NCBI GenBank assembly: GCA_964234715.1
Contig: OZ174287.1
Strand: one strand, 5' to 3'
Length of the DNA: 64,000 bases
Source of the DNA: Podarcis melisellensis
Lineage: Eukaryota
The notes beneath the pieces are model-generated. The model ran no database searches and had not been told where the DNA came from. It worked only from the letters and a program-made list of their open reading frames with translations. Of the stretch, positions 36,161 to 64,000 are shown piece by piece (within the stretch, counting starts at the first letter, position 1; each line of letters opens with the position of its first letter). A program made the position numbers and the translations under genes.

Positions 36161-36299
36161 TTAGTCAGGTCAGAGGCAGGTGGAAAGGAGGAAGGAATGT
36201 TTAAAATTGGGGCTCGGCAAGGTCTAGATTTTAGAAGAAAATGGGAATGACTAAGGGGAGCTAAACTCCTCCCTCCACTTTGCCTCCTCGTGCTATTTA

Positions 36300-39162: not shown

Positions 39163-42100
39163 TCAACTATGGTCACCCTTCTTCTTTACTAGCTTCTCTT
39201 TACTGTTCATCTCAGGTCTAAGTATAATGATGTAGATTTTGGGGAGGAAGATGCAACCCAATAAGCCAGCAGTAGAGGCCAAGATGGAGAAGATCTCCAC
39301 AGCCACCATGTATTTCCCTTTGGTGCTCAGATAAGTGGGGACAAAGGACAGCCAAACACTGCAGAAGACCAGCATGCTGAAGGTAATCAACTTGGCTTCA
39401 TTGAAAGTATCAGGCAACTTCCTGGCAAAGAAAGCCACAGAGAAGCTCACAATGGCCAAAAGGCCCATGTAGCCGAGAATAAGGTGGAACATGATGTCGG
39501 AGCCTTCATTGCACTGCACTATGATCTGCCCATCCTGGGAGTGCAGGTCAAACTCTGGGAATGGGGGAGAGGATGCCAGCCACCCAAGACAGATGCCAGC
39601 TTGAATGAGAGAACAGAAGGTGATAAGGGATCCTGCCAGCCTCTTCCCAAGCCATTTCCTCAGGCTGTTCCCAGGCCTGGTCACCATGAATGCCAAAACC
39701 ACAGTGAGGGTTTTGGCTAACACACAAGCAACAGCAATGGAGAAGACGATGCCAAAGACGGTTTGCCTCAAGACACAGGTCACCTTTGTAGGCCTGCCAA
39801 TGAATAAGAAGGAGCAGAGAAAGCAGAGAAGCAGAGAAGAGAGCAAGGTGCAGGTGATGCCCCAGTTGTTGGCTTTGACAATGGGAGTGTTCCAGTGCAG
39901 ACCGAAGGTCCCCATCACAACAACAGTGACCAGGGAAAGCAGGAGAGCCAAGGAGGCCAACATTGCCCCCAAGGGCTCCTCATAGGATAGGTAGCTTATT
40001 TTTTTCGGAATACATTGGTTGTGAAAGACATTTGGGTAGTGATCATCTGGGCATTTCTCACACTGATCTGCATCTGAAAGTGAGAAGCATTCTTTTAGCA
40101 TTTCTTGAAGCAATGATTATTAATATTATTGATACCGTCTATTACAGTGGTGCCTTGCAAGACGAAATTAATCCGTTCCGTGAGTCTCTTCGTCTTGCGG
40201 TTTTTGTCTTGTGAAGCACGGCTATTAGCGGCTTAGCGGCTTAGCAGCTATTAACGGCTTAGCGGCTTTAAGAAAAAGGAAACAAACTCGCAAGAAATTG
40301 CAAGACGTTTCGTCTCGCGAAGCAAGCCCATAGGGAAATTCATCTTGCGGAATGACTCAAAAAACGGAAAACCCTTTCGTCTAGCAAGTTTTTTGTCTTG
40401 CAAGGCATTCGTCTTGCGGGGCACCACTGTATGCGGTACACGAAACATATTACTGAACTGATGAACCAAAGTCTACTTTCACAACTAAGTGATGGTTCCT
40501 CCATGAGCATCTCAGCTGTACTAATCAATCCATTCATATTTATTTGTCATGGTTGCAGTACACTGATTGATTTCAGTGTTTCCTCCTTAAACATGTCTAT
40601 CTCTGCATCCAGCCCCATGTCTTTGCATTTCAAGGCTTGCAGCCCAAGTGTTTCTACACTTTCTGTAATTGAGTTTGGGAGTAGATGAAACAGCCAGGTC
40701 ACCTGTCATTTGCTCACTGGGAAGATCTATATTTGACAAGAAATAACTTTTCCTAAGGACTGAAACTGTGTGGATACAATAGAGAAAATTGTTCACTAGT
40801 TGTTAATCACAGAAGTTGAAAATCTGTTGGCTGCTGGTTCAATGCTGACAAAAAGGGAATCTATGAAGTGCAACCCTAATTATTTCTTCCCAGATGTATG
40901 TCATCTTGATTTCAATGGTGGTTACTCCCACGTGGACGTTATTTCACACAATATACTCTTGAATGGCTATCCAAAGGGGAGGAGAGAGGAAAGGACAATA
41001 TGTATCAGTAACATATAATCACGTGTGCTTGGGATCTATGACAGAAAATAAGCAGACACAATAAGACTGAAACATGAATGTCTGTGTTGGAGAGGAAGAT
41101 GGGAATTCCAGTTGACTTGGGTTCCTTCACTTACCCTTCTGGACTGAAATCCTCCCTTTAGGGCACTGAACACAGTCATAGCAACAGATTTGCTTTCCCT
41201 GCTGGGGAAACATACTCTGTCCAGGGTGGCAGCTCTCAACACAGGTGGAAATGGGCAGCATCTAGTGGTGATGACAAGCAAGGGATTTTGAATGGAATAA
41301 GCTTGCTTCTCTACATAACTCTTATTGACATCTACGTCCGCTTTGCAGCAGAAAAGTCACAGGACTGAAATTAGCGGATGGCTGTCAAGCATTTGCTCCC
41401 TGGGCAAGCATCAGGCCCCCCAATAAAGATGCTTTGTGCTGTCACTTAACCATTTGGCCAGCGCAGCACATGTCTGAATGGTAAAGAGAAGCTAGTGCCA
41501 ACCTTCTCCATAACCCATAACCCGATGCTGATTCCCTCCTGGAGGGAGAGGAGAGCTGAAATAAGGAGCCGGCTGCTTCTCTTTCTTACCAACTTTCAGA
41601 TTAAACTATACAATGCATGTAGATGTTACTTACATTGCTAATACATCTTAGATAGATTTTTATCTAAGATAAATACTGTTACAGACTGAGAGCATCACAA
41701 GAGAACATTCCCGCTGCTCTAACTGTTTAGACTGCTCATAACTGCCAAAGCTGTAGAAATTTACATAACTATTCCCTCTTATGTGTGCTTTTTGTGGGGG
41801 GGCCATTGTGTTTTTTATTTTCATTATGTTTTATGTATGTATTCATTATGTATTTTATGGTTTTATATGTTGATTTTACTCTGTGAACTGCCCTGAGACC
41901 TCCAGTTATATAGCAGTTTATAAACTCATTCATTCATTCATTCATTCATTCATTCATTCCATCCATCCATCCATCCATCCATCCATCCATCCATCCATCC
42001 ATTAATTTCTTCAGGCATATGACAGCACAGCATTCTATAGCCTTCTGAGCATTAGCCCTTTCGTTAGCCTTTTGCATGCTTTCATCCCACGCATTATGGC

Positions 42101-45100
42101 CAAGCCTGCATGGAGTTTGGCCTCACCAACAGCCTGATGGAGACCAACCTCCTGGGACAGGATATCACCGGTACTCCATCAACATTAGTGACCACACACT
42201 TCAGGTGGTAGATGATTTTCTTTCTACTTGGCTCCACATAGTGGGACAGAGTCTGAAACCATGATTGTTGCCAACAACGCATTTTAGAGCACAACAGTCC
42301 CTTTTCAAGAGCTTTAAACACTTGCCAATTCCTCACTCAGAAAGACCTTGTTCTTAACCCTAAACTCCCAATTAGCTTCAAACTAGCTCTGGATCAACAA
42401 ATTTGAACAAAGTAACAAAGATAGTATTTGATCTTGTTAACAATGAGGTGACAGAGGAATTTAAGATAGAAAAAGGGACACGACAAGGCTGTCCAATTTC
42501 CCCATTGCTTTTTATATCGGTCCTGGAGGTTCTGTTGAATATGATCAGAAGGGACCAGTTGGTTAAAGGTATACAAGTCAGAGCTAAACAGTACAAACTG
42601 AAAGCATTTGCAGATGACTTAGTATTGACATTACAGGAGCCAGAATCTAGTACTAAAAGAGTTTTGGAACTGATTCAAGAATTTGGTCAGGTTGCAGGAT
42701 TTAAACTGAATAAGTTAAAAACAAAGGTTTTAGAGAAAAATTTAACAGCGATTGAAAGAGAGAGGTTTCAGAATGAGACAGGATTAACAGTAGTTAAGAA
42801 AGTGAAATACCTGGGGATTAACATGACAGCTAAAATTGGGAACTTATTTAAAGACAATTATGAAAAATGCTGGACGGAAGTGAAAAAAGATTTAGAAATT
42901 TGGTCAAATTTGAAGCTTTCACTGTTAGGCCATATTGCTGTGATAAAGATGAATGTATTGCCAAGAATGTTATTTCTGTTTCAAACATTGCAAATTCTGG
43001 ATAAAATGGATTGTTTCAAGAAGTGGCAGAGAGATATTTCTAGATTTGTCTGGCAGGGCAAGAAGCCCAGAATAAAATTTAAAATATTAACAGATGCAAA
43101 GGAAAGAGGTGGATTTGCCCTGCCAGACCTTAAACTTTATTATGAATCAGCAGCTTTCTCCTGGTTGAAAGAATGGCTACTTCTTGAAAACACAGACATC
43201 TTGGACTTAGAAGATTTCAATAATGTATTTGGATGGCATGCATATTTATGGTATGATAAGGTCAAAGCACATAAAGCATTTAAAAACCATATTGTCAGGA
43301 AAGCATTGTTTAATGTCTGGATAAGATATAAGGACTTGCTTGAAAATAAAACCCCAAGGTGGTTGTCACCAATGGAAGTGAAGGCTCAGAAAAAGCTCAA
43401 TATGGAGGCCAAATGGCCGAAATATTGTGAAATTTTGGAACAAGTGGGAGACAAACTGAAATTGCAGAGTTATGAAAAACTAAAAAACAAAGTGCGAGAT
43501 TAGCTTCATTATTATCAAATAACGGAGGCATACAATTTGGACAAAAAAAATGGATTCCAGGTGGAAAAAGACTTTGTCAAGGATGTATAACTTGCTGTTG
43601 AAATGGAATACTCAGGATGAAACAGTGAAATCAGCTATGATTAAATGGGCACAGGATGTTGGACATAATATTATGATGGCTGACTGGGAACAGTTATGGA
43701 CCACAGGTATGAAGTTTACAGCATGTAATGCTTTAAGAGAGAATATTATGAAAATGATATACAGGTGGTACATGACACCAGTCAAGCTTGCAAAAATATA
43801 TCATTTGCCCGATAATAAATGTTGGAAATGCAAAGAGACTGAAGGTACATTCTTTCACCTTTGGTGGACGTGCCCAAGGATTAAGGCTTTCTGGGAGATG
43901 ATATATAATGAAATGAAAAAGGTATTTAAATATACCTTCTTGAAGAAACCAGAGGCCTTTCTCCTGGGCATCGTCGGCCAATTGGTGCCAAAGAAGGATA
44001 GAACTTTCTTTATGTATGCCACAACAGCAGCAAGAATACTTATCGCAAAGTATTGGAAGACGCAAGATCTACCCACTCTGGAAGAATGGCAGATGAAGGT
44101 GATGGACTACATGGAATTGGCGGAAATGACCGGCAGAATCCGAGACCAGGGAGAAGAGTCGGTGGAAGAAGACTGGAAGAAATTTAAAGTCTACTTACAG
44201 AAATACTGTAAAATTAATGAATGTTAGAATGATGTTGGATAAGAAGTTAAGTGGTTTTTAGCTGTAATGCTATAAAGGAATATGAAAAAATGGATTATTA
44301 ACAGGTAAAAATTTAATGTTATAATACTTTAAGATTAAAGGATTATAAAGGAGGGAAAGGATTTGCTGAACTAACAAATTGAATTGGAATACAAAAAAGG
44401 GAGGTGTGAGGAGGTCCGGGAAACAAGCAAATGAAAGATAAGTAATGGAAAGATGGAATTGTTTTTAACTATTTTTATTTTGTATTTTTCTTTTTTCTTT
44501 TTTCATTTTGTAATATTTTGAAAATCTTAATAAATGTCTTTTTTTAAAAAAAAAAGATAGTATTTGATCATGGAGTACTAGAGCTTTCCTCCCCACACTT
44601 CTCCTTTGTAGCCCTCTGTGTTTTTCTGGATCCCCTGATCTTCTCATTAAAGATGATGATGGATGATAATTAAAACAAAAAAATGGTCACACCCACCTGC
44701 TTGAACTTGGGATTCCATGCAATGGCACTTCCATCCACTGTGAACTCTTTTCCTGGGGGGGCCTGAGGGTCCATTCTCCCCACTCGGACTCTCTGGAAGG
44801 ACTTATTGGGAAATGTGACCAAGTTGAGGAGATCATAGCCACCTGCCTGCTGCCCCTTCTCATCCAAAGAGATTTCTTCCCCAGCACTGTTGTTGAAGTG
44901 GATGTTCTTCAGGAAGGAGTGAAGCTAGATTGCAAGAGGGGAAAAAAAACACAGACCTTGGAGGCTAATACACTCTCTCTTTTCGATTTCCCAGTTGGAC
45001 CTTTGGCTTTTTACTACCATTCATCAGTATGTTCTAGGATGCTGAAAGCTGCCCTGCAGGGAGTCAAATCATTGCTCTATATAGCCCAGTCATTTCTACA

Positions 45101-48100
45101 CTGGTTGCTATTGGCTCTCTAGGGTTTCAGAGCCTTTCCCATCATGATCTTGAGATGCTGGGGGTTGAACATGGGACCTTCTGAATGAAAACAGATGTTC
45201 TGCCATTGAGCTGTAAGCCTTTCCAGTTCCAATATTAAGAGGCATGACTTGGTATGCTTTTCGACTTGCCATGGATTCTGGGTAATTCAGAAACCTCCTC
45301 CATTAACACCTGAAACTGCCTTGTGCTGAGTCAAACCATTGTTCTCTGTAGCCCAGAACTGTCTACTCTGAATGGCCACAGTTCTATTTGGCATACATTC
45401 AAGGTTTCAACTGAGTTCTTATAACAGAGGACACCCCTCATCCTTGTACAGCCCCAAGTAGGAGAATCCTGGATGGATTAATTTAAAGAGCTTTGAATGT
45501 GTAGCTTCCAAAGCATGTGGCCTTTAACTGAGATCAAGTCCCTCCCAATGATAGAGCTCACCAGTGAAAATCCCCAAGGTCTCTCCTCTACGCCAAGGCT
45601 CAGCTGTGAAACATATGAACCAGTAATAATAACTCCTGTGCTTCTAACACAGATAAGAGTAGTTGACAGTACCTGCCAGGGCTTAACTTTTGGCTGCGTC
45701 CATCTCTCACCCAGTACTTTCTGTTTGGTTCTTGAGGAATACATGCTATGGAGAGCATGTGCTACTGCATGGACGGCATTGTAGATGGTGTAGCTCTGGC
45801 TGGACATTTCCATTTCAAACACGGGTCCAGTGAGTTTCTCAAGCTTCTCCCTCCCAGTGCAGGGTTCATGAGTTGTGTGAATTAGATTGTGATCTGGGAA
45901 TGAACAGAGGAATGCACTGGCCCAGAACTGCTGAATGAAATAAAGATTTGGCTGCCATGGATTTATGGTCTGTAGAAAGTCCTGAAACCCTGGAACTGGA
46001 TTTGAATGGAGTGTAAATGACAAAGTGCCATTGAAGGATTTTGAAGGAAAATTGCCTCCAGCCAGCACTGCAGTGAAATCCCATTGAGCTATTGTAATCC
46101 ACACCCTCTCCACTGGGTACATAGAGAAAACCTCAAGGGAGACTAAAACCAGTCTCAAAGCCTCTAGAGACTGACTGTCTCCATAGACAAGAATCACATT
46201 CATTTGCTGCTGTGTGAGAACAAACATGATTGGTCTCAACTTTTGTTGAAGTAGCTCATTAGGTAAAAAATTTGTCACTAGTGGGATCACCAGTGTCCAA
46301 GAAATACAAAGATTATTCTGGGAAAGCCTTGGTCTGAGAGTATGAAGGAAGGTTTCTCCACTGTCATCATCTGAAACAAGGAGGCCAATCCAGTTCCACC
46401 CAAACTTCCTGAGTAGCCAGACAATGCCATCATACTGAGCTTCTTCATTGGGGACCATTTGGAAGAAGGAAGGGAAGTGCCTTTGGTCACTCAGCCCTGG
46501 ATCCAAGGAGCCATAGCTGAGCTAAAGGGAAAGGCATTCTATTTTTAAGAATCCAAAGACCGTCTATTTGTTCCTAGAAAGAATACTTCTGTATTATGGT
46601 AGTTATCCACCTGGTCTTACTTTTGTAAGTATACACCCCTGGCATTTTAAGTCTCAGGCTGGGAGAAGTTTCTAAGCAGGAAGCTGGATGCTCCTATGAT
46701 TACATGATTTGTGACATGGCCAGGTTTGGAAGAACCAGAGCTTGGATTATTAGTATTATGGATTTACTCCCCCCCCAAAAAAAAAATCCCAATGCAAATT
46801 GAGACGGTAGTGTTGGCAACACATAGCTAGGAGGCTTTAACATAATCATGTACCCATACCTAACGTAGGACATATGTGTAGAAAACATAATGTAATGGGA
46901 TTGAAAGCTAACCTGGATGCTTTTTGACGTTTTCTGTGTATGTCTGACCTTGTGGTTGTATCTATGTATCTAAACACATACCTGTGGAATCTTGTAGGTG
47001 TTTAATATATTGGCCATCTGAATGGAGTTTTGGGAGGTGAGCCCTCCAACAACGGCAATTAATCTATCTTCCCCATTACAGTGGTAATTGGGGAGATTTC
47101 GTTGTCCCATGAAAAGAAGAGCAAGAGTGTTCCAACAAGTTTGTGAAGGATTAAAACCATTCTCATAAAATGTTGATCCCAGTGTGATGTTGGATAAGAA
47201 TTTGGCATTCTTGTTGATCTCTTGCATAGCAAAGATGAAAGCAAGAACATGCTGGTAGTTTTTTGGGAGGACTCTGCAATGAGACAAAGAATGACTGCAA
47301 ACATGACAGAAGAGAAACAACTGTGTTGAAGTTTTCATTTTGATTCATGCATGTATTTAACTTGGATGTTTCAGCCTACACGACAAGAACATTCCATTCA
47401 AACTAATATACTACAGCAGTCTCCTAAGATACTATGATTAGATGTTCAGTATGTAAATAGTAGATTCAAGGAGATCCATTGTTGTGCTGTGGATAAATTG
47501 ATGGGGTTGGATATTGGAAACTCAGAAACAAAAAGTTGTTAACCTGCCAAGTTCAGTCAGGCTCTAATTCTTTCCCCACTTAACTAGGTTCAAAATCACC
47601 AACACAGTGGGATTTAATACTGAGTAAATCATTGCATGTTCCCAACACTACCTATGCCTGTTTCTTATACACAATGTTCACGCCTACCTCTTGTTCTGCT
47701 GCTTTGTCCATCACCTCCCTTCCATTTCTGAACCATGAAGTATTCATGGGAAAGTGTTCGCAATTCAACTAGGGATACAACTCTTTAGTATACCAGTGTG
47801 CTTTAACACACAATGTCTTTTTAGCAGCCCTTGAATCTAAGCCTTATAGATATGCTTTCCTTTTTAAAAAAACAAAAAAACAACTTGGGAAGCTAAATCT
47901 TCCTCCTCTTTTTTTATTCAATGGGATTCGCTTCCCATATAATCATGCAAGGCATTATAGGGTGTGATACACAACCTTCCATTGGAAATTGCTTATTCCC
48001 ATGTAAACATGTGTTAAGGAAATCTCTCCTTGATCCCAAATATTTAAGAGGAAGCATCCCACTTACCTGGGAGTAAGTACCACTAAGCTCAGTGGTGATT

Positions 48101-49152
48101 ACTTCGAGTAGGTAAGCCCAGATTTGCCCTGTCAGGCTAAAAGCTGATGTATGTTTGGGGTGTGGAGCGAAGCCCATGGAACTGAACAAAGCTTACTTGC
48201 AAGAAAATTTTGGCACAGGGATGGGCTGCAACATCTATGGGTTGAAGTAGCTTGAAAACTTCAGCTGGGTTGTGGATGGGGCTCATATGGGCAAAAAGCA
48301 GGGGCAATCTAGGAGCCACACTTAAGCACTTTGGAATCCCCATAGATTTCAACAGGATTCGGGCCCTGTACCCACTGAACACAATGAAGGGACTTGTTTT
48401 CAAGTTAATGTGTCGCTACTGCTGGGCTTTGCTCTTTGAGGGAAAAGGAGGGAACTGCAGTTTATCAGACTCAAAATGAAAAGGTGATTTTTTGGTATCA
48501 TCTAAAAGAATAGCAAGTTGTAGGTAGTTCCACTTCAGTGTAGCAATACAGAAACACAACAATGAACTGCAGGGGGGGGGGGAGTAGAACAGCATTTCAA
48601 GCAAGTCCAAATTTGTATTGAAGTACTTCTTAATTCTTTCCACAAGAATGAATATCTTACTTGAAAGACAACTCTGAAAAACATTTTTAACACTATGGTA
48701 CAGAGGGATTTGATTAGGCCACATATGGTGCCTTAGACTGATGATCTTGAGTTTATTTCTGCTAACTCAAGTGGTGGGACAAAAATCTGAATGTTCCCTG
48801 TGAAGGCTGACAGAAGAACCGAAGACAAAAGCCGATGCAGTTGTTTATTTCATCAAGTCATGAATAATCAGTGGACCCAACAGAAAATTCCCTGTAAATA
48901 AGTAACTACTTACTGAGCATATAGTGCAGAGGATTGTGGGTACTCCATAAATTTCTGCATTCTGAAGTTTGCTAGCGTAATGGATATAAATTCACCGATG
49001 ATCATGTCTGCTGGAGGACCATATGAATTGGTTTGAATTGTTTTTCTCAATCTGCAAGAGCTCAAACTCTTGCTAGAAGAACAATGCATCAGCAACAGCA
49101 GGAAAAGCAGGTGGTGTGCTGACCATTCTTGGGCTGAACTGGAAGCCATCAT
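39163..49152 (-). CDS. Vomeronasal type-2 receptor (class C GPCR) V2R-1, intact, 881 aa
   Basis: Six exons: 49152-48914, 47273-46982, 46521-45673, 44924-44697, 41261-41135, 40073-39163 (239+292+849+228+127+911 = 2646 nt, phases compatible). Signal peptide, Venus-flytrap domain, Cys-rich domain (CVESC...CCYDCVQCP) and 7TM ([16 protein letters not shown]). TATA-like at 49284. Confidence 0.93.
40145..40429. mobile_element. Tigger/TcMar-like MITE in V2R-1 intron 5
   Basis: TIR cagtggtgcc..gcaagacg / cgtcttgc..ggcaccactg with TA TSD; empty site in the paralog near 57725. Confidence 0.88.
41926..42001. repeat. (TTCA)n(TCCA)n compound microsatellite
   Basis: Read directly; not expanded in the paralogous intron near 59135. 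Confidence 0.9.
42434..44552 (+). mobile_element. Young 5'-truncated L1/Tx1-like LINE in V2R-1 intron 4
   Basis: ORF2 RT ([18 protein letters not shown]) and C-terminal CCHC region in ORFs 42403-43503 and 43550-44227. Poly(A) tail. 17-bp TSD AAAGATAGTATTTGATC at 42417-42433 and 44553-44569. Absent from V2R-2. Confidence 0.95.
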
Positions 49153-51020
49153 GTTTACCTATATTCACTAACAGCATTTCAGTCTTGGCTGAAGTTATAA
49201 GGAAACTTGGCTGCATGGAGGCATGTACCTGCCTCAAATCTACCTCCCTTACTGGATTTATGTAATGTGATAGGACAGGTGCCTATATAGACTACAACAC
49301 AGGACCATCACATTTGGAAAGGGCTGTTTCTATGGCTTATATTGTGCCTGGCATCTGATTTGCCATGGGACATTTAAAAGTAGTGATGCTGATCAATAAT
49401 TATAAGAATTACAGGGTGAAGTATTTGTTTTGCTAAGGTCCTCAGGTCTCAGAACAAGCAAAGTTCTTACCCTCTAAAATGTGGCTCTTTTGGGGGGTTG
49501 GTGGGGGTGTTATTGCAGTATTGTTTTTATTTTTATTTTGTATATTGTGATCTTTTTTGTGAACCGCCCTGAAACCTCTGGGTATATGGTGGTATATAAA
49601 TTCAATAAATGAAATGGAATGGTTTCTTAGGAGGGGGTCCAGGAGTGCACAATGACCATTCCCCACATTAACTGGAGGGCGGCTTTTGCATGGTTGCACA
49701 CAGCCTCCCCCGGGACTATGAGACTCCTGGCTAGGCAGCTTGGCTTTGCTGACCCTCCTCCCCCCTAAGCTGGATACCTTGAGGTTCCCACCTAGCCTTA
49801 ACAATTAGCCAATCGTGGTCGGGAGGCCATTGCCAAAAGGGGGTCTCAAAAATGGTCAGGGGGATACCTCCCACAGAGACACATCTGTCCTTTGGGTTGA
49901 TGTTCTATTGATAACAATACCACCTGAAGATTTCTCTCTCTCCAAGCTGACTTGGAAGCTAGATTTCTATGTGGGTCTGAATACCCCCATACACATTCAA
50001 GGGGAACATTTGTCTCCCAAACAAGGGAGTTTACATTCTCCATTATATTTACTCTCGGCCTCAAAGCACCCACAGAGCCACAAACAGCAAGATGACTATT
50101 TATTAGGCATCCTGTGGAATGTGCTCAGAAGCAGCCCTGGGGTTGTTGTGCCTGACCACATGATGACATCTGGCTGTGTCTATAAACATGAACTCTGTAC
50201 ACTGGGACAGAACTGAGTGGGGAACCAGAGTTGCGAAAGTGTTGGGGGAAGCATTCCAAGCTGCTAGACATTAATGCTAAACCATATGCGCTCTATATTG
50301 TGAATACCATATGGGTGGGGGTTAAATGGAAGGAGAAAATCTAGACATTTGGGGGATGGGGAAATGGAAAAAAAGGAGAAAGGCAGTGGTGACAGCTCCC
50401 CACCCTAATATTTGACTGCTATGCCTTTCTTGCTGAAACCTGGTTTTGCTGCAGTCATGAGCATCAAAAAAACTCCTATCCATCTCCCAGCAGACACTAA
50501 GTCCCCCCCCCCAACAATGATTCACTTGGAATAACCATATGCCACCATGTAGTATAATTCCTGGCAGGAAATGGTTGTAGCCTACCTGCTCATAAAACGT
50601 GTTGCAGACACTGAGTGCCAATTGGATCTAGCCAGGACCTCAACTTTTATCTCCAATGAATCGTCCAGGTACTCTGCCTCCCCTATGGTATGTCTAGCTA
50701 AACTTGAAGTCCCTAAGCGCTGGAGGGCCTTTACCTTGGCCCTTCAGCTGTCCTTGAAGGCTGATACAGGAAGATTGCTTACCTGGAGAAACAATGCGCC
50801 TGTGACTCTGGACAAATAGAAACAACAGACAGACATTGCTGGTTTAACAGAATCAAAGCAGGTTTCTTTGCCACTATGGTTTAAGGGTGTTTTCTTTGTT
50901 TGTTTTTTAATTGCAGTAAAGCAGAGCTGGACAGAATGGCAGCAAAGGGGGGGGGGGTTTCTTGCAAGGGATGGCATAATTGTTAAAAAGCTGAATATTT
51001 GGATCTGGGCATTGGAAATC

Positions 51021-51464
51021 TTACGCTGTGACGATGATGCTTTCGTCAAAGTGCACAGGCTCATTATTCTGATTACAGGCAATGACAATGTATCTGGACG
51101 ATCTGTTATTGGAGTACTCGCAAGGTGGGCGAGTTGAGCCGCCTTTGTGCTTGCAGGTGGTGACAGTGATGGGGCGGAGAGCAATCCTCAGCCCATTCCC
51201 ATAATCCTCCCCTCCAGATTCAGTGCACACAGATTTGATGTTATTCTTGGTGCCGTGGATGAAGGTGTTCACTTCCTTGCATGGTTTGTCCAGCCCACGT
51301 CTTTTCATCATGACGTCACAATACTGCTTTCCAACGTTGCTCTTGGGATTATCGTAGTGCTGCCTTAGGAACTTCTCATAGGGGGTTTCACAATAGGCTC
51401 CCAGTGCCAGAACAGACACCAGAAAGGAGAGGAGCACAAGGCCAGATCCCTTGAAAGGCATCAT
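51021..51464 (-). CDS. Secreted RNase A-family ribonuclease, angiogenin-like, 147 aa, single coding exon
   Basis: Signal peptide MMPFKGSGLVLLSFLVSVLALGAYC. Catalytic H (RQHY), K (CKEVNTF) and H (PVHFD); 6 Cys in the mature chain. Acceptor tctctttcag| at 51481, 16 nt before the ATG. ATTAAA at about 50906. Confidence 0.95.
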   Translation of the reverse strand: MMPFKGSGLVLLSFLVSVLALGAYCETPYEKFLRQHYDNPKSNVGKQYCDVMMKRRGLDKPCKEVNTFIHGTKNNIKSVCTESGGEDYGNGLRIALRPITVTTCKHKGGSTRPPCEYSNNRSSRYIVIACNQNNEPVHFDESIIVTA

Positions 51465-52457
51465 CGTGGGCGACCGCTGCCTGAAAGAGATACCTGGGGG
51501 GAAAGTAAAGTGGGTGTGTAAATGCTTTCTTTCTGTTTGCCACCAGAGGGTGCTTTGTGAAACAGCTTGGACTTCAAATGAATGCTGTACTGTATATCCT
51601 TGCAAATTCTTATCTGCAAATGTTGTGGTGGATGTTATCTAGTCATGATCACATAACCATGTGAATATTGATACAAACCAGTCACCATGCATCATTCTTG
51701 TTTGTAAACCCAATAAAAAAACCAATATAAAAGAAGAAGCTTGGACCATTGTTGAGGGTCAGGGAGAAGGAGGCAAAGAAGATAGGATATTTGTACAAGC
51801 TCAGTTAAGTTTCTGGCTGAAGTGAGATGTGCGCAAGGGACTCACTGGTATGAAACTGAGCTCCAGACTAGCACTGAGAGACCAGGGTTCAAATCCCCAC
51901 TCAGCCGTGAAGCTCATTGGGAAACCCTGGGTCAGTCTTAGTCTCTTACCCTAGCCTGCCTCACAGGATTGATGAGAGGATTGCCTGAAGGAGGAGAACG
52001 ATGGATCCATCCATCCATGGATCCATCCATCCATCTCCCTTTTGTATAAACTCCCTTAAAATCCTTCTGAAAGTCTTCATCAAGCGCCACCAGCAGCTCA
52101 ACAAGACAGCGGGGTATAAGATTTATTTCTTAACCTTTAGGTTAAAGTGCTGTACACTTGGGAACACCATGAACTTTAAGTAGCTGGGTTGGTGTTGCAG
52201 CGTCGGTAGATTTAAACAATTGTTCCAATTGTTTATTTTGCCTGCTATAATCTTTTGCCTGCTATAATCTTTTCGCATAGACTTTTACATAAATGCATCT
52301 TAAGCCCCCCCCCTTTTCTAGTAGGATTTAGTAAGAGCTAAATTGGAGTCACTTTTACATGTGCAATTTGTGCACACAACAGCTCCCTCATCTTGTGGTT
52401 TAACGTTGTATGTTCACCCCTCTTAAAAATATCTATTCCCCTAATAATAACTGCTTG

Positions 52458-52886
52458 CTTGTGTATTCTCCTCACCATAGAGAAAGTGTTGACTAAGGAA
52501 TGTAGAAAATGTAAGATTAGAAAGCAAAAATAATCCAGACTGTTTATTCTTCATGTGCCTCCTAACTTCTGAACCTAATGCTGTCATTTGTTCTCTTTTA
52601 AAGAAACCGTTTACAGTTTTGTGAAATGGAATGATAGAAACTGCAACCAACTCAACAGCTACATCTGCAAGAAAAAAAATCTAATCCAGCAACTGTCATT
52701 CCCAACTGTGCCTTCTGTGATTGATGGACAACTCTCTGGAATCATTACCTCCTCTCCAACCCCTCAATGATCAACTCTCATCCATTATTGAGGGGCAACA
52801 TTTCAATATGAGTAGGGAAATGAGAGTACTCCTAAACATTTTAAAGAAAAAAAGCACTGCCCATTGCAATGTACATTAACTAATTT
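52458..52886 (+). pseudogene. Inverted orphan copy of the CTL-C terminal exon with flanks
   Basis: 52458-52788 is the reverse complement of about 20360-20032 (exon from 52604: ETVYSFVKWNDRNCNQLNSYICKKK, with +1 nt before the stop). It is fused to the reverse complement of about 17190-17093. Confidence 0.88.
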
Positions 52887-53343
52887 TCTCCCAGGAAAGA
52901 CGCGTGGCTTGGGCATGCTGCAGGCCCCGCGGTGAGTGCTGCCTGGCATTTGGTCACCCCCTCAGTGGTGACACCTGGGGCGCTACGCCTCCACCGCACC
53001 CCCTTGCTCTGTCCCAGGGTAGCCCACTAGCATTAGCAATAAAAAAAGGAGATGTGGAGATGGCAGAGGCAGGACAGAGGTGGCCTTGCATGTGCTGAAT
53101 AAAAATCACTGGAATTATCAGGGTGTGTCCCATCCCCCCCAGTGATCTTAACCCATCTTACAAAGCTGGAGAAATTCAATGGGAAATTCAGCTGTGTTGA
53201 AAAATTCAAAGGGAGACAAATTTCAAAGGGTGGCTGTGTTTCAGCTCTCATATTGTGTCAGATACTACAAATTCAATTAAGTTTGCCTTTAAATGGAAAC
53301 TGAACTGAATTTCTCCCCAACTCCAACCCAACCCCAACTCCAG

Positions 53344-53940
53344 CTTACCCAGGTGCTGTCCTGTTGAAGTGATGGATTTCCTCTTTCTACAACTCTGTCT
53401 CCCAAGTTGGCTGCCTTAATTCTTATATGGAGCTTAGTCAGGTCAGAGACAGGGGAAAGGAGGAAGGAATTTCAGCCTTTTAGATATATGCAGAGTACAT
53501 ATGAAGAAAGAAAGGATGTACTTCAAATACTCATAGAAACACATGATTTGGTTGCATGAATGTATTTGTGTGGAAGGTGATGGGAAAATAAATATTCTAA
53601 ATACAATAAAAAGACTTAACTAAAAGAACAAGTCTAGAAACAAAGAACAGGTCTACAATCTGGAGATACTGTAAAACGAAATCCAGGAGGGGCACTTCCT
53701 TCACCACTTTCTATTTTGAAACTGAAAGATCTCAGTGAAGTGGGGTGCTGAGTCTGCTCCAAGGGCACACCCTCACTTCAGGTAGTGCATAGTTAGCCTG
53801 AAACAAGACTGGCCTGCATCCTTCAGAAATGGAGAGACTGCCTTGGAATCTTTCCCAGAATCCTCTACCACATGCAAGACTGAGTCATAGCAGAAGAGTC
53901 AATGTGGCAAGAATTCCATAAAACCGAAACTGTGGAAATC
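53344..53940 (-). promoter_or_regulatory. CTL-type proximal promoter and non-coding exon 1 now upstream of the RNase exon
   Basis: TATAAG at 53422-53427; donor GTAAGC (cttac at 53344-53348). TTCCCAGAA (53852-53860) and TGAGTCA (53881-53887) are retained. Confidence 0.7.
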
Positions 53941-54364
53941 ACTTGCATTATTCATTTTTTTTAAACTGGGGGTTGACGAGGTCTAGATTTTAGAAGAAAA
54001 TGGGAAATGACTGAGGGGAGCTAAACTCCTCCCCCCTCTTTGCCTCCTCATGCTATTTAACTTCCCCCTCCTTGGCTCAGCTGGAATATAAGTAACTGTG
54101 GTGATGGAGGGTGGGGAGCTTAAATGGGGAGTGTTCTGCTTCTTCTACTACACCCATGCCCTTGCTTTCTTCTCCTCAACTTCTCAACCCACAAACCCAC
54201 ATAGTATATATATATTTACTTACCTGCGAGAACTGAATGAGACTTTGATGGAAGAAGGATGTGGACAGATATGTGGGTATAGGGTATAATGCTAGTGAAA
54301 GGCCCCAATACAAAATATAAATCAGTAGCCATAGCATCAGAAGTGAGTTTCTGATTGTCTCCAA

Positions 54365-54455
54365 CTTACCCAAGTTTTGTCCTGTGAGGTGATGGATATC
54401 GCGTTATGCAGGGGCAAGTTTGTCTCTGAAGCTGCTGCCTCAATTCTTATATAGA
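54365..54455 (-). promoter_or_regulatory. CTL-type distal TATA and non-coding exon 1 module (copy 2)
   Basis: CTATATAAG at 54446-54454, donor GTAAGT (54365-54369); paralog of 36818-36910. Confidence 0.68.
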
Positions 54456-56330
54456 TCTTGGTGAAGTTGGGGGTTGGGGCAGGGAAGGGAGAAGGATGAA
54501 AGTTCAATCACTTGCCATATGTTGAGTAGATAGTGATAGGATAAATATGTTTCAATTTCCCTGGAATTCTCTCCAGTGTGGACTTAATTTACATGTTGAG
54601 TAGATATCGATAGGATAAATATGTTTCAATTTCCCTGGAATTCCCTCCAGTGTAGACTTAATTTATGGTTATGACCACTATACAGTTATGTTTCTGACAA
54701 TGGGTTGGAAAGCAAATACCCTAAATAAAAAATAAGCACACATAATTAACATCAGATAATGCATCTGCCTTCTGGAGCTTAGTCCATATCTAGGCGGAGT
54801 ACTTTGTTCAATATGTTTGATATTAAAATGGAAGGGGAACAGAGTGCACCTTTTGCTCAAGGGCACAGACTCACTTTGCATTGTTGATACCCAACAAGGA
54901 TGGCCAGCTTCCTTCAAAAGGGAGTGTTTACACTGGAACATTTCCCAGAATCCTCTGCTACATGAAGGGATTCTGTGACAGGCAAATCCGCATGGCAAAG
55001 AATCCACAACTGTGAAAATAGCTTATGTAAATTCAAGCTAGGTGTATATACATATCTACATTTAAAAATGAAGTTTGGTGAAATTAAAAGATGCTGCAGG
55101 GGGAACTGAGATTTCAATTTCTTTGCTGTCCATGCTCTTTTGCTTTAGGTTTTCCCCCTCCCTGGTTCAATTCCAGGATTTCCAGGCTTCTTTTTTAGAT
55201 ATGCTATAAGCCGCCCACTCTGGCTGGGATGTTGTTATGATTGTGATTGTGATTATTATGGCTGGGAGAAAAGCTAGACAGGGGTGAGGGTGGGTTTCAG
55301 CTCCCATCACCCCCACTAGCATCCAGTTGACTCAGCTACTAGAGGATTGTGTAGCTAGTCCCTGATATCAGCTACTAAAACTTTGTGGCTGCTGTATTTT
55401 TCTGGTGACAGCAATTTCCTCACACACAACCCCCCACAACATCTGGGTCCTTATGGAAGGATGGCACTCACTTGTGCAGAGATGGTTTTTATATATGTAT
55501 AAAGAGTATATAGTGTGTGTGTAAGTAGGGTTGCTGGTCTTAATATCTCTTTTACAGGAACACAGAAAATATTCTCACAGCATCCACAAGTCTGAGTTTA
55601 AATATGTATGTCCACTGCCAGATGATTTATATTACGCTTGATGCTTTGCATGTTTGTATGGTCCATTGGGGATTTTTTTCTTAAAACACACACACACACA
55701 CACACACGTCACATGTCTTTTTTTGTATAAGGTTTTATTCAGACATTTCACAATACAATAAAAAGAAACTATTCTAAACAGAAAATAATAAAAAGAAAAG
55801 AACAAAACAAAAGAAGAAAAAGAGGTAGATGAATACAAAGCTCTCTCTCGTATATATCCTAATTTTGAGCAATGAAATTCATTTAAAAGATACCTCTATT
55901 ATTTAAGAACTGTGTGGTTATGGTCTTCCTGGGATCAAGGTCATGACCCACCAACTTCTAATTTATTTTGGTAAGCAGAATGGTAAACTAGCACGAATTA
56001 ACAAGAGCTCAAATGATTTTGATGTCCTATTTTTCAATCACTCAGCAGCTACTCCATTTTCAATCCTGCTGCAAATTGCTTCCACATGACATTCCATGTG
56101 GACAACACCCTGGTGAAGCAGACCCCTGTAAGTAACAGTATTTCATATTCTGCTCTCTTTAGTTTGTGTTCTGGGGGTATAGAAAGGTAGGCCAAAAAAC
56201 AAAGATTAAGTCAACAAAACAACATACATAAAAATCTCTCAGTCTAACCTACCTCACAGAGTTGTTGTGAAGGCAATACAGAGAGAGAAGAGCCATGTAT
56301 GCCACCATGAACACTTGGATGGCATAGAAT

Positions 56331-56466
56331 AGGGGTTTCCAAACTTGGGTCTCCGGCTGTTGTTGGACTACAGTTGAAAACATCCATAGCTGGCAAGGCT
56401 AGTTGTCAAGGATGGTGGGAATTGTAGTCCAAAAACAGCTGGAGACCAAAGTTTGGGAATTGCTGG
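56331..56466. mobile_element. hAT-like palindromic MITE
   Basis: ccaaacttgggtctccggctgttgttggactaca / tgtagtccaaaaacagctggagaccaaagtttgg. Confidence 0.65.
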
Positions 56467-56743
56467 CATAAGGAGAAAAAGACAGAAGCAAAGGAAATAG
56501 CATCTTCTTGCCACAACATAAGGTTGTGGGAAACTACGGTTCAAATCCCCATTCAGCCATGGGTCAGATATCATCTCTCAATCTAAGCTTCTTCACAGAA
56601 TTGTTGAGAAAACAATAGCAAGAGAAGGAGAATTATGTGCTCCTTGGATGGCATAGAAGACGGAATATAATATAAAAACAAAGGAAATAGCATCTCCTTG
56701 TCAGAACATAAGGTCCCTGGCTAACGGCATCTCTTTCACCCTC

Positions 56744-59700
56744 TCAACTATGGTCATCCTTCTTCCTTACTAACCTCTCTCTACTGTTCGTCTCAGGTCT
56801 AAATATAATGATGTAGATTTTGGGGAGAAAGATGCAACCCAGTAAGCCAGCAGTAGAGGCCAAGATGGAGAAGATCTCCACAGCCACCATGTATTTCCCT
56901 TTGGTGCTCAGATAAGTGGGGACAAAGGACAGCCAAACACTGCAGAAGACCAGCATGCTGAAGGTAATCAACTTGGCTTCATTGAAAGTATCAGGCAACT
57001 TCCTGGCAAAGAAAGCCACAGAGAAGCTCACAATGGCCAAAAGGCCCATGTAGCCGAGAATAAGGTGGAACATGATGTCGGAGCCTTCATTGCACTGCAC
57101 TATGATCTGCCCATCCTGGGAGTGCAGGTCAAACTCTGGGAATGGGGGAGAGGATGCCAGCCACCCAAGACAGATGCCAGCTTGAATGAGAGAACAGAAG
57201 GTGATAAGGGATCCTGCCAGCCTCTTCCCAAGCCATTTCCTCAGGCTGTTCCCAGGCCTGGTCACCATGAATGCCAAAACCACAGTGAGGGTTTTGGCTA
57301 ACACACAAGCAACAGCAATGGAGAAGACGATGCCAAAGACGGTTTGCCTCAAGACACAGGTCACCTTTGTAGGCCTGCCAATGAATAAGAAGGAGCAGAG
57401 AAAGCAGAGAAGCAGAGAAGAGAGCAAGGTGCAGGTGATGCCCCAGTTGTTGGCTTTGACAATGGGAGTGTTCCAGTGCAGACCGAAGGTCCCCATCACA
57501 ACAAGTGTGACCAGGGAAAGCAGGAGAGCCAAGGAGGCCAGCATTGCCCCCAAGGGCTCCTCATAGGATAGGTAGCTTATTTTTTTTGGAAAACATTGGT
57601 CCTGAAAGGCATTTGGGTAGTAATCATCTGGGCATTTCTCACATTGATCTGCATCTGAAAATGAGAAGCATGCTTTTAGCATTTCTTGAAGCGATAATTA
57701 TTAATATTATTGATACCATCTATTATGCGGTACACAAAACGTATTACTGAGCTGATGAACCAAAGCCTAATTTTTCAACTAAGTGATGGTTCCTCTCTGA
57801 ACATCTCAGCTGTATTAATCAATCTATTCATATTTATTTTTCATCGTTGCAGTATACAGATTGATTTCAGTGGTTCCCCCTTAAACATGTCTATCTCTGC
57901 ATCCAGCCCCATGTTTTTGCATTTCTAAGCTTGTGGCTCAGTGTTTCTTTTTTACACTTTCCGTAATGGAACTTGGGAGTGCATGAAACAGCCAGGTAGC
58001 CTGTCATCAGGAACATCTATATTTGACAAGAAATAACTGTTCCTAATGATTGAAATTGTGTGGATACAATAGAGGAGATAATTTACTATTTATTAATAAC
58101 AGAAGATGAAAATGTGTTGGCTGCAGTTTCAATGGTGAGAAAAGGGAACCTATGGCATGCAATCTTAACCATTTCTACCCAGATGTATGTCATGCTGATT
58201 TCAATGGTGCTTACTCCCATGTGGATGTAATTGCACACAAGATATGCCTGAATAGCTGTTCAAAAGTTAGGGGAGAGGAAAGGAGAATATGTGTCAATAA
58301 CATAAACACATGTGCTTGGGATCCATGACAGAAAATAAGCAGACATAATAAGACTGAAACATGAATGTCTCTGTTGGAGAGGAAGATGGGAATTCCAGTT
58401 GACTCGTGTTCCTTCACTTACCCTTCTGGAGTGAAATCCTCCCTTTAGGGCACTGAACACAGTCATAGCAACAGATTTGCTTTCCCTGCTGTGGAAACAT
58501 ACTCTGTCCAGGGTGGCAGCTCTCAACACAGGTGGAAATGGGCAGCATCTAATGGTAATGACAAGCAAGGGATTTTGAATGGAATAAATCTTATGTCCGC
58601 TTTGCAGCAGAAAGGTCACAGGATCGAAATTAGAGAATGGCTGTCAAGCATTTGCTCCCTGGGCAAGTATCAGGCCCCCTGATAAAGATGCTTTGTGCTG
58701 TCCCCGAACCATTTGGCCTGTCCAGCACATGTCTGAATGGCAAAGAGAAGCTTGTACTAACCTTCTCCTTCTTGATAAATTGATTCCTCATAACCCAATG
58801 CTGATTTCCTCCTAGAGACGCTCTCTTTTAAAGTTTAAATAAGAATAATTTTTTATTTAGTGTACTTGAAATTGCAGATTAATACATACAATGCATGTGG
58901 GTGTTACTTACATTGCTAACATATCTTACATAGATTTTTATCTAAGATAAATACTGTTACAGACTGACAGCAGCACAAGAGAACATTCCTGCTGCTCTGT
59001 TTAGACTGCTCATATTTGCCATAACTGTACAAACTGACATAACTATGCCCTTTTAAAATGTGTTTTTTATATGTTGGTTTTAATCTCTGAACATCCTTGA
59101 GACTTCTGGGTATCGGGCAGTATATAAATTTAATCAATCCATCAGTTAATATCCTCTGACATATGACAGCACAGGGTTTTTTAACCTTCTGTGCACCAGG
59201 ACTTTCCTTAGCATTTTGGATGCTTTCATCCCACACATTATGGCTCAGCCTGATGGAGACCAACATCCTGGGACAGGATATCACCAGCACTCCATCCATC
59301 AACATCAGTGACCACACACTTCAGGCAGTGGATAATTTTCTTTCTACCTGGGCTCCGCATGGCAGAGATTGTTGGCAACAACGCATTTTAGAGCACAACA
59401 GTTCCTTTTCAAGAGCTTTAAACACTTGTCAATTCCTCACTCAGAAAGACCTTGTTCTTTAATCCTGATCTCTGAATTAGCCTCAAACTAGCTCTGGATC
59501 AACAAAGCAACAAAAACAGTATTTCATCAGTGAGTACCAGAGCTTCTCTCCTCACACTTCTCCTTTGTAGCCATTTCTGTTTTCCTGGATCCCCTGATCT
59601 TCTCATAAAAGATAATGATGATGGATGATTATTAAAACAAGAAATAGTACCGCCCACCTGATTGAACTTGGGATTCCATGCGATGGCACTTCCATCCACT

Positions 59701-62700
59701 GTGAACTCTTTTCCTGAGGGGGCCTGAGGGTCCACCCTCCCTACTCGGACTCTCTGGAAGGACTCATTGGGAAATGTGACCAAGTTGAGGAGATCATAGC
59801 CACCTGCCTGCTGCCCCTTCTCATCCAAAGAGATTTCTTCCCCGGCACTGTTGTTGAAGTGGATGTTTTTCAGGAACAAGTGAAGCTAGATTGCAAAAGG
59901 AAAAAAGACACAGACCTTGTAGGCTAATACACTCTCTCTTTTCCCTTTGACAAGTGGACCTTTGGCTTTTTACTACCATTCATCAGTATGTTATAGGACA
60001 CTGACAGCTGCTTTACAGTGAGTGAAATCATTGCCCTAAATAGCTCAGTCACTGATTGTTATTGGCTCTCTAGGGTTTCAGAGTCTTTCCCAGCATGATC
60101 TTGAGATGGTGGGGATTTGAACATGGTCCTTTTTGAATGAAAGCAGATGCTCTGCCATTGAGCTGTAAGCATTTCCAGTTTCAATATTAGGAGACATGAC
60201 TTGGTATGTTTTTAACTTGGCATAGATACCAGGTAGTTCAAAAAACTCCACATTAACATATGCAACTGCCTTGTGCTGAGTCAAACCATTGTTTTCTGCA
60301 GCCCAGAACTGTCTGCTCTGAATTGCCACAGTTCTATCTGGCATACATCTGAGGTTTCAACCCATTTCTGATACCAGAGGAGAGTCCTGGCCCTTGCACA
60401 GTCCCAATTAGGAGAATCCTGGGATGGATTAATTTCAAGAGCTTTGAATGTGCAGCATGCAATGCATGTGGCCTTTAACTGAGATCAAGTCCCTCCCAAT
60501 GATAGAGCTCACCACTGGAAATCCCCAAGGCCTCTCCTCCATGCCACGGCTCAGCTGTGAAACATATGAACAGTAATAATAACTTCTGTGCTTCTAACAT
60601 TGAGGAGGGTAGTTGACAGTACCTGCCAGGGTTTAACTTTCTGCTGCATCCATCTCTCAGCCAGTACTTTCTGTTTGGCTCTTGATGAATACATGCTATG
60701 GAGAGCATGTGCTACTGCATGGACGGCATTGTAGATGGTGTAGCTCTGGCTGGACATTTCCATTTCAAACACGGGTCCAGTGAGTTTCTCCAGCTTCTCC
60801 CTCCCAGTGCAGGGTTCGTAAGTTGTTTCAAGTAGATCTGGGAATAAACAGAGGAATGCACTGGCCCAGAACTGCTGGATGAAATAAAGATTTGGCTGCC
60901 ATGGATTTATGGTCTGTAGAAAGTCCTGAAACCCTGGAACTGGATTTGAATGGAGTGTAAATGACAAAGTGCCATTGAAGGATTTTGAAGGAAATTTGTG
61001 TCTAACCAGCACTGCAGTGAAATCCCATTGAGCTGTTGTAATCCACACCCTCTCCACTGGGTACATAAAGAAAACCTCACAGGAGACTAAAACCAGTCTC
61101 AAAGCCTCTAGAGATTGACTGTCTCCGTAGACAAGAATCACATTCATTTGCTGCTGTGTGAGAGCAAACATGATTGGTCTCAACTTTTGTTGCAGTAGCT
61201 CATTAGGTAAAAAATTTGTCACTAGTGGGATCACCAGTGTCCAAGAAATACAAAGATTATTCTGGGAAAGCCTTGGTCTGAGAGTATGAAGGAAGGTTTC
61301 TCCACTGTCATCATCTGAAACAAGGAGGCCAATCCAGTTCCACCCAAACTTCCTGAGTAGCCAGACAATGCCATCATACTGAGCTTCTTCATTGGGGACC
61401 ATTTGGAAAAAGGAAGGGAAGCGCCTTTGGTCACTCAGCCCTGGATCCAAGGAGCCATAGCTGAGCTAAAGGGAAAGGCATTATATTTTTAGGAATCCGA
61501 AAACCATCCATTTATTTATAGAAAGAATACTTCATTATTGTGGTGGATGACCACCTGCTCTTACTTTTCTAAGTATACACCTCTGGCATTATTAAGTCTC
61601 AAACTAGGAGAAGTTTCTAAGCAGGAAGCTGGATGCTCCTATGATTACATGATTTGTGGCATGGCCAGGTTTGGAAGAACCAGAGCTTGGATTATTAGTA
61701 TAATGGGTTTAAGCCCCCCGCCCAAATCCCAATGCAAATTGAGACGGTAGTGTAGAAAACATAATGTAATGGGATTGAAAGCTAACCTGGATGCTTTTTG
61801 AGGTTTTCTGTGTATGTCTGCCCTTGTGGTTGTATCTATGTATCTACACACATACCTGTGGAATCTTGTAGGTGTTTAATATATTGGCCATCTGAATGGA
61901 GTTGTGGGAGGTGAGCCCTCCAACAACGGCAATTAATTTATCTTCCCCATTACAGTGGTAATTGGGGGGATTTCGTTGACCCATGAAAAGAAGAGCGAGA
62001 GTGTTCCAACAAGTTAGCAAAGGATTAAAAGCATTCTCATAAAATGTTTTTTTTTTTAAATAATTTTTATTAAGGTTTTCCAAATTAAAACAAATAAAAT
62101 CCAATTCATAAACTTTTTCCAATATCCAGGACTTCCCCTCCCCACCCCCTCTTGTGTTCCAAATCTTCCAAAAAAGCAATAATATTCAACAAATTCTTAT
62201 TCCCAAAATACACTCATCATCAATAACTCAATTTATCCAAATTTCCATCCCCTAAGGTCGACCTATTCCCTTCCACGAGTTCCCCCCTTTCAAATATAGT
62301 ACAGATAAAAATAGAATAAAAACAAACAATAATTTTACAACCTTTGGATTCCAAATTTCCCTCCCCTCTTTCCCTGTTGCGTTCCTCTTATCCCTCCACT
62401 TCTAATGTCTTCCTGATGAACCCACATTTCACTAAACCCACATCCCTCTGGTTCTTTACCGGTCTTTTTTTTTTAAATTACAGATGTCCAATCATAGAAG
62501 GAGTCTATCAAAGGGGGCCCATTTCTTCTATCCAGATTTTTATATCCAGGAGTATAAACTCCAATTTTATATCCATAAGCTTGTCAAATCTGGATATCCC
62601 AAATGTTCCCACTCCAGTTCTGTCCAGTTCTTGTTGTTTCCTTGTTCTTGTCAATCACTCTCCTCCTTTTTACTTCCCTGTTCCCTCACAGAAATGTTCT

Positions 62701-64000
62701 TTTTCCAAAGGCTTCTAGTGTCTCTACAGAGGCTTGTTATTCAGGAGCAAAACATTACATCATGTTCCTTTCATTTTTCAACAGATTAATCCATTGTTTC
62801 CAGTAAAGTGTAGGCCTCTGTAGACAAAATAATGTTCCATTTCTGCAGTTTCCCAGGAGATTAAAAGTTCTATCCAACTGTTCAAGTTTCCCGTCGAAAA
62901 CACATGCAATGTCCCTCAGCTCCTCTAGGTGGATTACAATAACAAAGTTCCCTTCCAGATCACATCCGCCAGTCCAAATAACTTATAAATCCTTATTTGA
63001 AACAATTTATCTCCAATTTATAACAAATGTAACCGGCAAAGTCCTCATAACAAAGTCTCAATTTCATTCTTCCGTTTTGACAGCTCTTTGACAGCTGTCA
63101 AAACCTCCGTTATTCTTCTCCAGGCATTTTCACGAATCGCTCCAGGGATTCCGGGGGGGTTGCTTTTTAATCCAAATTCCACTTTTCTCCTCCAGCTCAA
63201 TCTTATAAATTTCCCTCGCGAAGTTGCTAGTTCGGCAAGATAAGGTTCCTCTCGATCTTAGTTATCCAGTCCTTTGTTTTGGCTCTTCTACAATTTGGGG
63301 GGGGCTGACTTCCTTTTTTCCACCTCCCCCGTTCGCTCCAAATTCTAAAAATTTATCCCTCTTTTTAGTCCATATTCCAATTACTCACGGGTTCTTCTTT
63401 TGGGTCCAAATTTTCAATAGAAGAAGTCAGCGCTCTCCGCCGGATGGCATGCGGCTGCGCTCGGCAGGGATAGCAGAGGACTCAAAGCACCACGCTCCTC
63501 CCCGGCACCCGATCCGTAGCCTTTAAAAAGGCTCCTTCACGAATCGAGAGGGCGCTGACGGTGCCAGCCGAGTCTCCATGTCCACGGCCTCCGTGGCCGT
63601 GGTTTTTAAGGGTCCCCGCATCGCCGGTGCGGTAGGACCCAGCCCCTGCCGAGCAGGCTCCCTCCGGAGCTCGGAGGGAGCCCGCCATTCGGCGATGGCG
63701 CCGACCCGGAAGTCCAAAAGCATTCTCATAAAATTGAGACGGCAGTGTTGGCAACACATAGCTAGGAGGCTTTAACATAATCATGTACCCATACCTAACG
63801 TAGGACATATGTGTAGAAAACATAATGTAATGGGATTGAAAGCTAACCTGGATGCTTTTTGACGTTTTCTGTGTATGTCTGACCTTGTGGTTGTATCTAT
63901 GTATCTAAACACATACCTGTGGAATCTTGTAGGTGTTTAATATATTGGCCATCTGAATGGAGTTTTGGGAGGTGAGCCCTCCAACAACGGCAATTAATCT
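56744..64000 (-). CDS. Vomeronasal type-2 receptor V2R-2 (5' end outside the window; original exon 2 disrupted, replacement exon 2 at the window edge)
   Basis: Intact exons 3-6: 61465-60623, 59885-59658, 58548-58422, 57654-56744. Exon-2 remnant at 62045-61856. A second exon-2 3' end with donor at 64000-63917. Confidence 0.82.
62047..63715 (-). mobile_element. Full-length non-autonomous L1-derived retroelement (1.67 kb)
   Basis: CpG-rich L1-type 5' end GGACTTCCGGGTCGGCGCCATCGCCGAATGGCGG, AATAAA plus poly(A), and TSD AAAAGCATTCTCATAAAAT (62027-62045 and 63716-63734). No RT and no long sense ORF. Confidence 0.85.

Follow-up and report, generated by a model that had tools for sequence, protein, structure and literature searches.

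To our knowledge, rearrangements driven by L1 retrotransposition are documented mainly in tumours and cell-culture assays, and we know of few clean natural germline cases in which the details of both junctions can be read, because such junctions decay fast. In cultured cells and tumours, L1 insertions have been found at the junctions of deletions, tandem duplications and translocations (PMC11702581; PMC7058536), and one figure legend describes part of the reciprocal end as retained between the reverse-transcribed sequence and its partner (PMC11702581, Fig. 5G legend). Deletions of NF1 associated with SVA insertions have been described, and base changes near breakpoints have been reported for error-prone replicative repair (PMC4229983). 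Here we consider a 64,000-nt stretch of DNA from the lizard Podarcis melisellensis (contig OZ174287.1 of assembly GCA_964234715.1; hereafter the window), whose right half carries two tandem vomeronasal type-2 receptor (V2R) units on the minus strand, V2R-1 and V2R-2. A non-coding poly(A) retroelement interrupts exon 2 of V2R-2, and the sequence 5' of the insert is the intron 2 and exon 2 of a V2R-1-type gene instead of the missing half of the target exon. We take the locus to be a germline example, arisen in nature, of the L1-mediated rearrangements already known as a class. Its junction can be read unusually well, since it is young enough for the putative nick site, the overhang that was kept, the join of 4 bp and a point change close by all to be visible.

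As in L1-mediated rearrangements, a poly(A) retroelement lies at the junction, one breakpoint falls at what would be an endonuclease-type nick, and the other is distant or paralogous with 0-4 bp of microhomology; in that class, too, a fragment of the reciprocal end can stay. Unlike the tumour and cell-culture cases, the present one is germline and natural and lies in a lizard chemoreceptor array, the mobilised RNA appears to be a non-autonomous, lineage-specific element, what remains of the reciprocal end is only an overhang of 15-19 nt, which puts the join exactly at the putative first nick, and an in-frame gene fusion is the potential result. The locus also resembles the products of template switching at stalled forks (FoSTeS), of break-induced replication that uses microhomology (MMBIR) and of microhomology-mediated end joining in its 4-bp microhomology, its colinear continuation into a paralogous template and a base change within 10 bp of the breakpoint. 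It differs from FoSTeS/MMBIR in that the initiating lesion was apparently a retrotransposition intermediate and not a stalled fork, and in that only one junction is visible. Finally, within a tandem array it would combine the 5' exons of one paralogue with the 3' exons of another, like the chimeric chemoreceptors produced by unequal crossing-over or gene conversion in V2R/OlfC arrays, but at a non-homologous 4-bp junction with a retroelement and not by homology-driven exchange.

In gene orientation, the order of parts is the 3' end of an exon 2 (exon 2'), a piece of intron 2, a 19-bp repeat, the element, the 19-bp repeat again, the remainder of V2R-2 exon 2, its own intron 2 and exon 3. The features at the junction are these:

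46796..47065, minus strand: V2R-1 stretch matched by the new piece
61466..61855, minus strand: V2R-2's own intron 2, without the 66-bp segment; 91% identical to V2R-1
61856..62048, minus strand: stranded 3' part of V2R-2 exon 2 (TFYENAF...NTYKIPQ); GT donor kept, no acceptor
62027..62045: poly(A)-side copy of the target-site duplication; next to it stands the intact exon's G(TT)
62047..63715, minus strand: non-coding poly(A) retroelement, about 1.67 kb, in gene sense
63716..63734: 5'-side copy of the target-site duplication; AAAT at its end (last 4 bp, 63731-63734) is common to the V2R-1-type intron
63735..63916, minus strand: V2R-1-type intron 2 piece, first 182 nt, including the 66-bp segment; one difference (63743)
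63917..64000, minus strand: V2R-1-type exon 2' piece, last 84 nt (28 codons), with GT donor; the window ends here

A sequence-only reading of the window had placed the element within V2R-2 exon 2, with its target-site duplication in the TFYENAF codons, and this proved right: the two copies of the duplication (AAAAGCATTCTCATAAAAT, at 62027-62045 and 63716-63734) are identical at 19 of 19 positions, a size in the range of about 7-20 bp expected of L1-type insertions, and fall on the T-F-Y-E-N-A-F codons of exon 2 (open reading frame 61844..62179). The same reading had the sequence past the second copy switch, at AAAT (63731-63734), to V2R-1-type intron 2 and the 3' end of exon 2, and had the new piece carry an intron segment and TSQN codons that V2R-2's own copy lacks. 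The alignments bear out both points. Positions 63731-64000 match V2R-1 46796-47065 at 269 of 270 positions (99.63%), so the 5' flank (63735-64000) is V2R-1-type intron 2 and exon 2 and not the 5' half of the target exon; at the join the two sequences share 4 bp, AAAT as read on the plus strand or ATTT along the gene. Compared with V2R-1, V2R-2's own copy reaches 95.99% identity (61750-62048 against 46876-47174), and compared with the new piece 97.87% over 188 bp; the intron segment, 66 bp in length, is missing from it, and it has TSHN in place of the TSQN of V2R-1 and the new piece. Chance falls far short of explaining an exact 19-bp repeat and a match at 269 of 270 positions.

The new piece and V2R-1 have a sole mismatch, 9 bp from the join: at 63743 the plus strand of the new piece has C where V2R-1 has T. 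It could be an error of repair synthesis or a sign that another paralogue was the source; a change so close to the join fits error-prone synthesis (PMC4229983). We rejected two other origins: a local tandem duplication, of 306 bp, that copied V2R-2's own intron and exon, as the new piece is V2R-1-type at all diagnostic sites and carries the 66-bp segment, and a 5' transduction, as the duplication sits between the element and the V2R piece. As an observation apart, the 66-bp difference in intron 2 (63756-63821, against 61761) is bounded by short GTGT repeats, which suggests that it is an old microhomology deletion in the V2R-2 lineage. The stranded half-exon also contains a donor-like AGGTATGTG at 61857.

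The element ends in T11 on the plus strand at 62047-62057, which is A11 on the minus strand, with an AATAAA at 62071, 14 nt upstream of the A11 tail, and begins with a GC-rich 5' part of about 320 bp (approximately 63393-63715, 61-67% GC in the GC profile). On the sense strand, no open reading frame longer than 51 amino acids is confined to the element, it had no Rfam match, its reading frames had no Pfam match, and no second copy lies within the 64-kb window. In three runs of organism A, its k-mers reach a depth of 1e4-1e5. High-depth family contigs of 146-217 nt match this copy with 0 differences, which places it very close to the active family sequence, and contigs of other copies diverge exactly at 63715, which defines the 5' end of the family and makes the insertion full length. 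Judged from these contigs, the element is a young member of a very high-copy family. The A11 tail, the polyadenylation signal, a duplication of 15-22 bp, a nick site ending in T and the canonical 5' end at 63715 together indicate L1-type target-primed reverse transcription of what would be a non-autonomous RNA. In the related organism B (run X4), the body of the element has a depth of only about 5, in long and nearly identical contigs, while its GC-rich 5' 320 bp are high-copy in both organisms; a burst of a composite element in one lineage would account for this contrast, and so would carry-over between samples in X4.

The geometry of the breakpoint can be read against the intact V2R-1 site, ...CATAAAATGTTGATCC. 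On the poly(A) side, V2R-2 reads ...CATAAAATG and then a T run (...AAAATG plus the T run), matching the intact V2R-1 exon (...AAAATGTTGATCC); since this left flank agrees with the intact exon, exon 2 was still whole when the element entered it. A nick in the plus strand after G, GT or GTT gives an expected duplication of 19-22 bp. The 5'-side copy ends ...CATAAAAT (...AAAAT) and continues TGAGACGG..., which is V2R-1-type intron 2, whereas a normal upstream half of exon 2 beside the element would read t-R-t-GTTGATCC.... By this geometry, the rearrangement has its breakpoint 1-3 bp within the duplication that one would expect, on the side of the first nick. The probability that an independent breakpoint would land at the first nick is roughly 5e-4 per 15-kb gene unit, and chance does not explain its position. 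The nick site taken from the intact paralogue, ATGTT|GATC, is a degenerate match to TTTT|AA. With respect to age, the duplication is perfect, the element is near its family consensus, and the patch matches at 269 of 270 positions in a pair of genes that otherwise diverge by 4-18%; by these measures, the insertion and the rearrangement are both very recent and equally young.

To look at the join in reads, we aligned contigs from four public runs to 61300-64000. In run X2, a 90-nt contig with a depth of 70.6 covers 63690-63779 with 0 differences, extending 45 nt to either side of 63734/63735 and including the private base at 63743. The other locus-specific contigs of this run have depths of 54-71, which puts the join at roughly single-locus depth. 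An assembly misjoin at 63734 is largely excluded, because this read-derived contig crosses the join without mismatch, and the junction described in the sequence-only reading is present in reads. Run X2 is one sample, which may be the assembled individual, and its contigs do not amount to population evidence. Separately, run X5 has contigs with the joints 61719>63734 and 61695>63731, which combine a V2R-2-like sequence left of the C run with the intron type containing the 66-bp segment. Because they combine both types, further intermediate-type paralogues or alleles exist, and V2R-1 is not necessarily the only possible donor.

On balance, we lean towards one L1-type, retrotransposition-coupled rearrangement in the germline as the source of both the element and the V2R-1-type flank. 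A single event is favoured over a later repair because the breakpoint coincides with the first nick, the left flank keeps the G(TT), and the right copy of the duplication is 1-3 bp short. The endonuclease would have nicked the plus strand in V2R-2 exon 2 (...CATAAAATGTT|GATCC), and a full-length copy of the young, non-autonomous poly(A) element would have been reverse-transcribed from that nick. A staggered second cut of the usual kind would then have generated a duplication of 19-22 bp at the target site. The DNA end that bore the element and this duplication would have been left unsealed to the remainder of exon 2. At the first nick, it would instead have been connected via AAAT to a V2R-1-type paralogue, in its intron 2, through microhomology-mediated end joining or an MMBIR-type template switch; the enzyme behind the cut or the switch there is a matter of inference. 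With V2R-1 on the sister chromatid as the partner, one would expect a tandem duplication of about 15.2 kb (46800-62048) and an intact V2R-2 upstream; with a nearly identical gene from further upstream in the array, one would expect a deletion. The depth bins are sums over paralogous contigs, by which duplication and deletion are inseparable. Either outcome would yield a hybrid gene with a V2R-1-type promoter and exons 1-2, a hybrid intron 2 of 2.45 kb, and V2R-2 exons 3-6.

Several points weigh against this proposal. What couples the insertion to the rearrangement is a matter of geometry only, and TGTT|GA only loosely resembles TTTT|AA. The reads in support of the join come from one sample only, possibly the assembled individual; among the records listed for X5 (a second individual) and X4 (the related organism) there is no bridging contig, which makes no statement on absence. 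Classical L1-associated deletions are usually without a target-site duplication, and in the present case the duplication is kept.

The best-surviving alternative is that two independent steps were involved, in which the insertion broke exon 2 and a later, unrelated non-homologous recombination or template switch brought in the V2R-1-type exon 2, possibly as a selected rescue. The final structure would be identical, a 4-bp microhomology is compatible with any end-joining event, and V2R arrays are prone to rearrangement, the window itself containing tandem V2R units. Sequence divergence cannot order the two events, both being too young. The difficulty is one of position: selection would have tolerated a breakpoint in the element, in the 5' half of exon 2 or in intron 1, and a breakpoint within 1-3 bp of the end of the duplication is left unexplained. 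We consider this history unlikely. It is close to the order given in the sequence-only reading, which had exon 2 disrupted and then rescued by ectopic recombination or template switching; the replacement of the flank at a 4-bp microhomology stands, while we do not retain the order of disruption followed by rescue, given that the join falls on the side of the first nick.

Template switching of L1 to other RNAs has been described (10.1101/2025.02.02.635956), and this lends something to the idea of a chimera formed at the RNA level, in which the reverse transcriptase would have switched from the overhang to an unspliced V2R-1 pre-mRNA and the upstream piece would be a retro-copied transcript. The orientation fits, as the new piece is in sense with the element, and two-RNA insertions have been documented (PMC11702581). 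On this model, however, the duplication should lie outside the chimera, and it lies between the element and the V2R piece; pre-mRNA of a vomeronasal receptor would also have to be expressed in the germline, and the piece includes intron sequence. This makes an RNA-level origin very unlikely.

The chance is slimmer that the join is older than the insertion, with an earlier local rearrangement at whose junction the element later happened to nick. Such a history would likewise leave a 19-bp duplication ending at the join, but a pre-existing join would give T after ...AAAAT in the left flank, where we find G as in the intact exon; it also requires the same positional coincidence, and the patch is as young as the element. 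Slimmest of all, and largely refuted, is an assembly artefact at 63734, whether by collapse of a paralogue or by a switch between haplotypes, for which the 99.6% identity of the patch to a paralogue 17 kb away and the location at the edge of the window can be cited, but against which stand the X2 contig across the join, at a depth like that of its neighbours and with the private base, and the tendency of misjoins to arise within long repeats and not at 4-bp overlaps.

Returning to the single rearrangement that we prefer, the structure that it leaves may be considered as a gene. As the sequence-only reading had it, the broken half-exon and the element would now lie in an intron: the hybrid intron (63916-61466) would be 2,451 nt long, has GT...AG ends, would contain both, and would use the acceptor of V2R-2 exon 3. 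The exon phases match, so that a V2R-1-like N-terminus of approximately 170 amino acids would be in frame with V2R-2 exons 3-6. With exons 3-6 of V2R-2 intact and GT...AG at the two ends of the hybrid intron, it is plausible that a chimeric receptor could be made. The continuation into the V2R-1-type sequence is colinear, and a complete exon 2' and an exon 1' upstream are therefore likely to judge from the part within the window. In a crude scan, the element's sense strand, which is rich in purines, gave no strong candidate for a cryptic acceptor. Two features are possible liabilities: the AATAAA of the element, which lies in sense inside the hybrid intron, and the element's A-rich sense strand, which may hinder the transcript. 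Because the event is so recent, intact downstream exons cannot separate a working gene from a fresh pseudogene. Among sequencing runs, none recorded as RNA contains this stretch.

The fullest version of the proposal, in which a single germline retrotransposition both destroyed the exon and, by a switch at the nick to a paralogous template, created an expressed in-frame hybrid receptor, appears distinctly unlikely from what the locus offers. If it were true, chemoreceptor arrays would draw shuffled exons and new genes directly from intermediates of retroelement insertion. A hybrid gene that is complete and expressed would mean that retrotransposition intermediates act as a gene-fusion mechanism, and in a fast-evolving receptor array it could alter the ligand-binding N-terminal sequence in one step; if it is not, the locus is a well-dated example of how a V2R pseudogene and an array rearrangement originate.

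The remaining gene parts of the two units are as follows:

49152-48934, minus strand: V2R-1 exon-1-like open reading frame
47273-46982, minus strand: V2R-1 exon 2, 292 nt; Pfam ANF_receptor
46521-45673, minus strand: V2R-1 exon 3
44924-44697, minus strand: V2R-1 exon 4
near 41261-41135, minus strand: V2R-1 exon 5
near 40073-39163, minus strand: V2R-1 exon 6
60623..61465, minus strand: V2R-2 exon 3, 843 nt, open (LSYGSLDPG...KVKPWQ); Pfam ANF_receptor, E=4e-34
59658..59885, minus strand: V2R-2 exon 4, 228 nt, open; translation ends NPKFNQ; AG and GT borders
58422..58548, minus strand: V2R-2 exon 5 (cysteine-rich); Pfam NCD3G, E=1.1e-13
56744..57654, minus strand: V2R-2 exon 6 (seven-transmembrane region and stop codon); open reading frame 56744..57682 intact; Pfam 7tm_3, E=1.2e-83

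All listed exons of V2R-1 and V2R-2 are open, with AG/GT borders. The Pfam families ANF_receptor, NCD3G and 7tm_3 fall on exons 2, 3, 5 and 6, in the six-exon layout of V2R genes, which encode class C G-protein-coupled receptors. In a self-alignment of the window, 35754-47174 aligns to 53017-62048 at 78-96% identity, with a gap (42401->44550 against 59506->59509) because a long interspersed nuclear element (LINE) fragment is present in V2R-1 only. This reverse-transcriptase fragment lies at 42403-44227 on the plus strand, within V2R-1 intron 4 (Pfam RVT_1, E=8e-18).

We compared the exons singly to annotated proteins, using exon 3 for the full-library search. The closest are four Podarcis muralis models named "vomeronasal type-2 receptor 26-like", at 88-97% identity per exon. 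Neither the full-library search with exon 3 nor word and cluster searches gave an identical annotated protein model. The Podarcis muralis RefSeq models of this V2R clade (P0153 and P0360-P0362) begin in or just before exon 2, and the start of P0360 is the same intronic open reading frame that is found in the window at 46970-47338 on the minus strand. The window has a plausible signal-peptide exon 1 at 48934-49152 on the minus strand; since the public Podarcis muralis models begin at exon 2, they may be missing exon 1.

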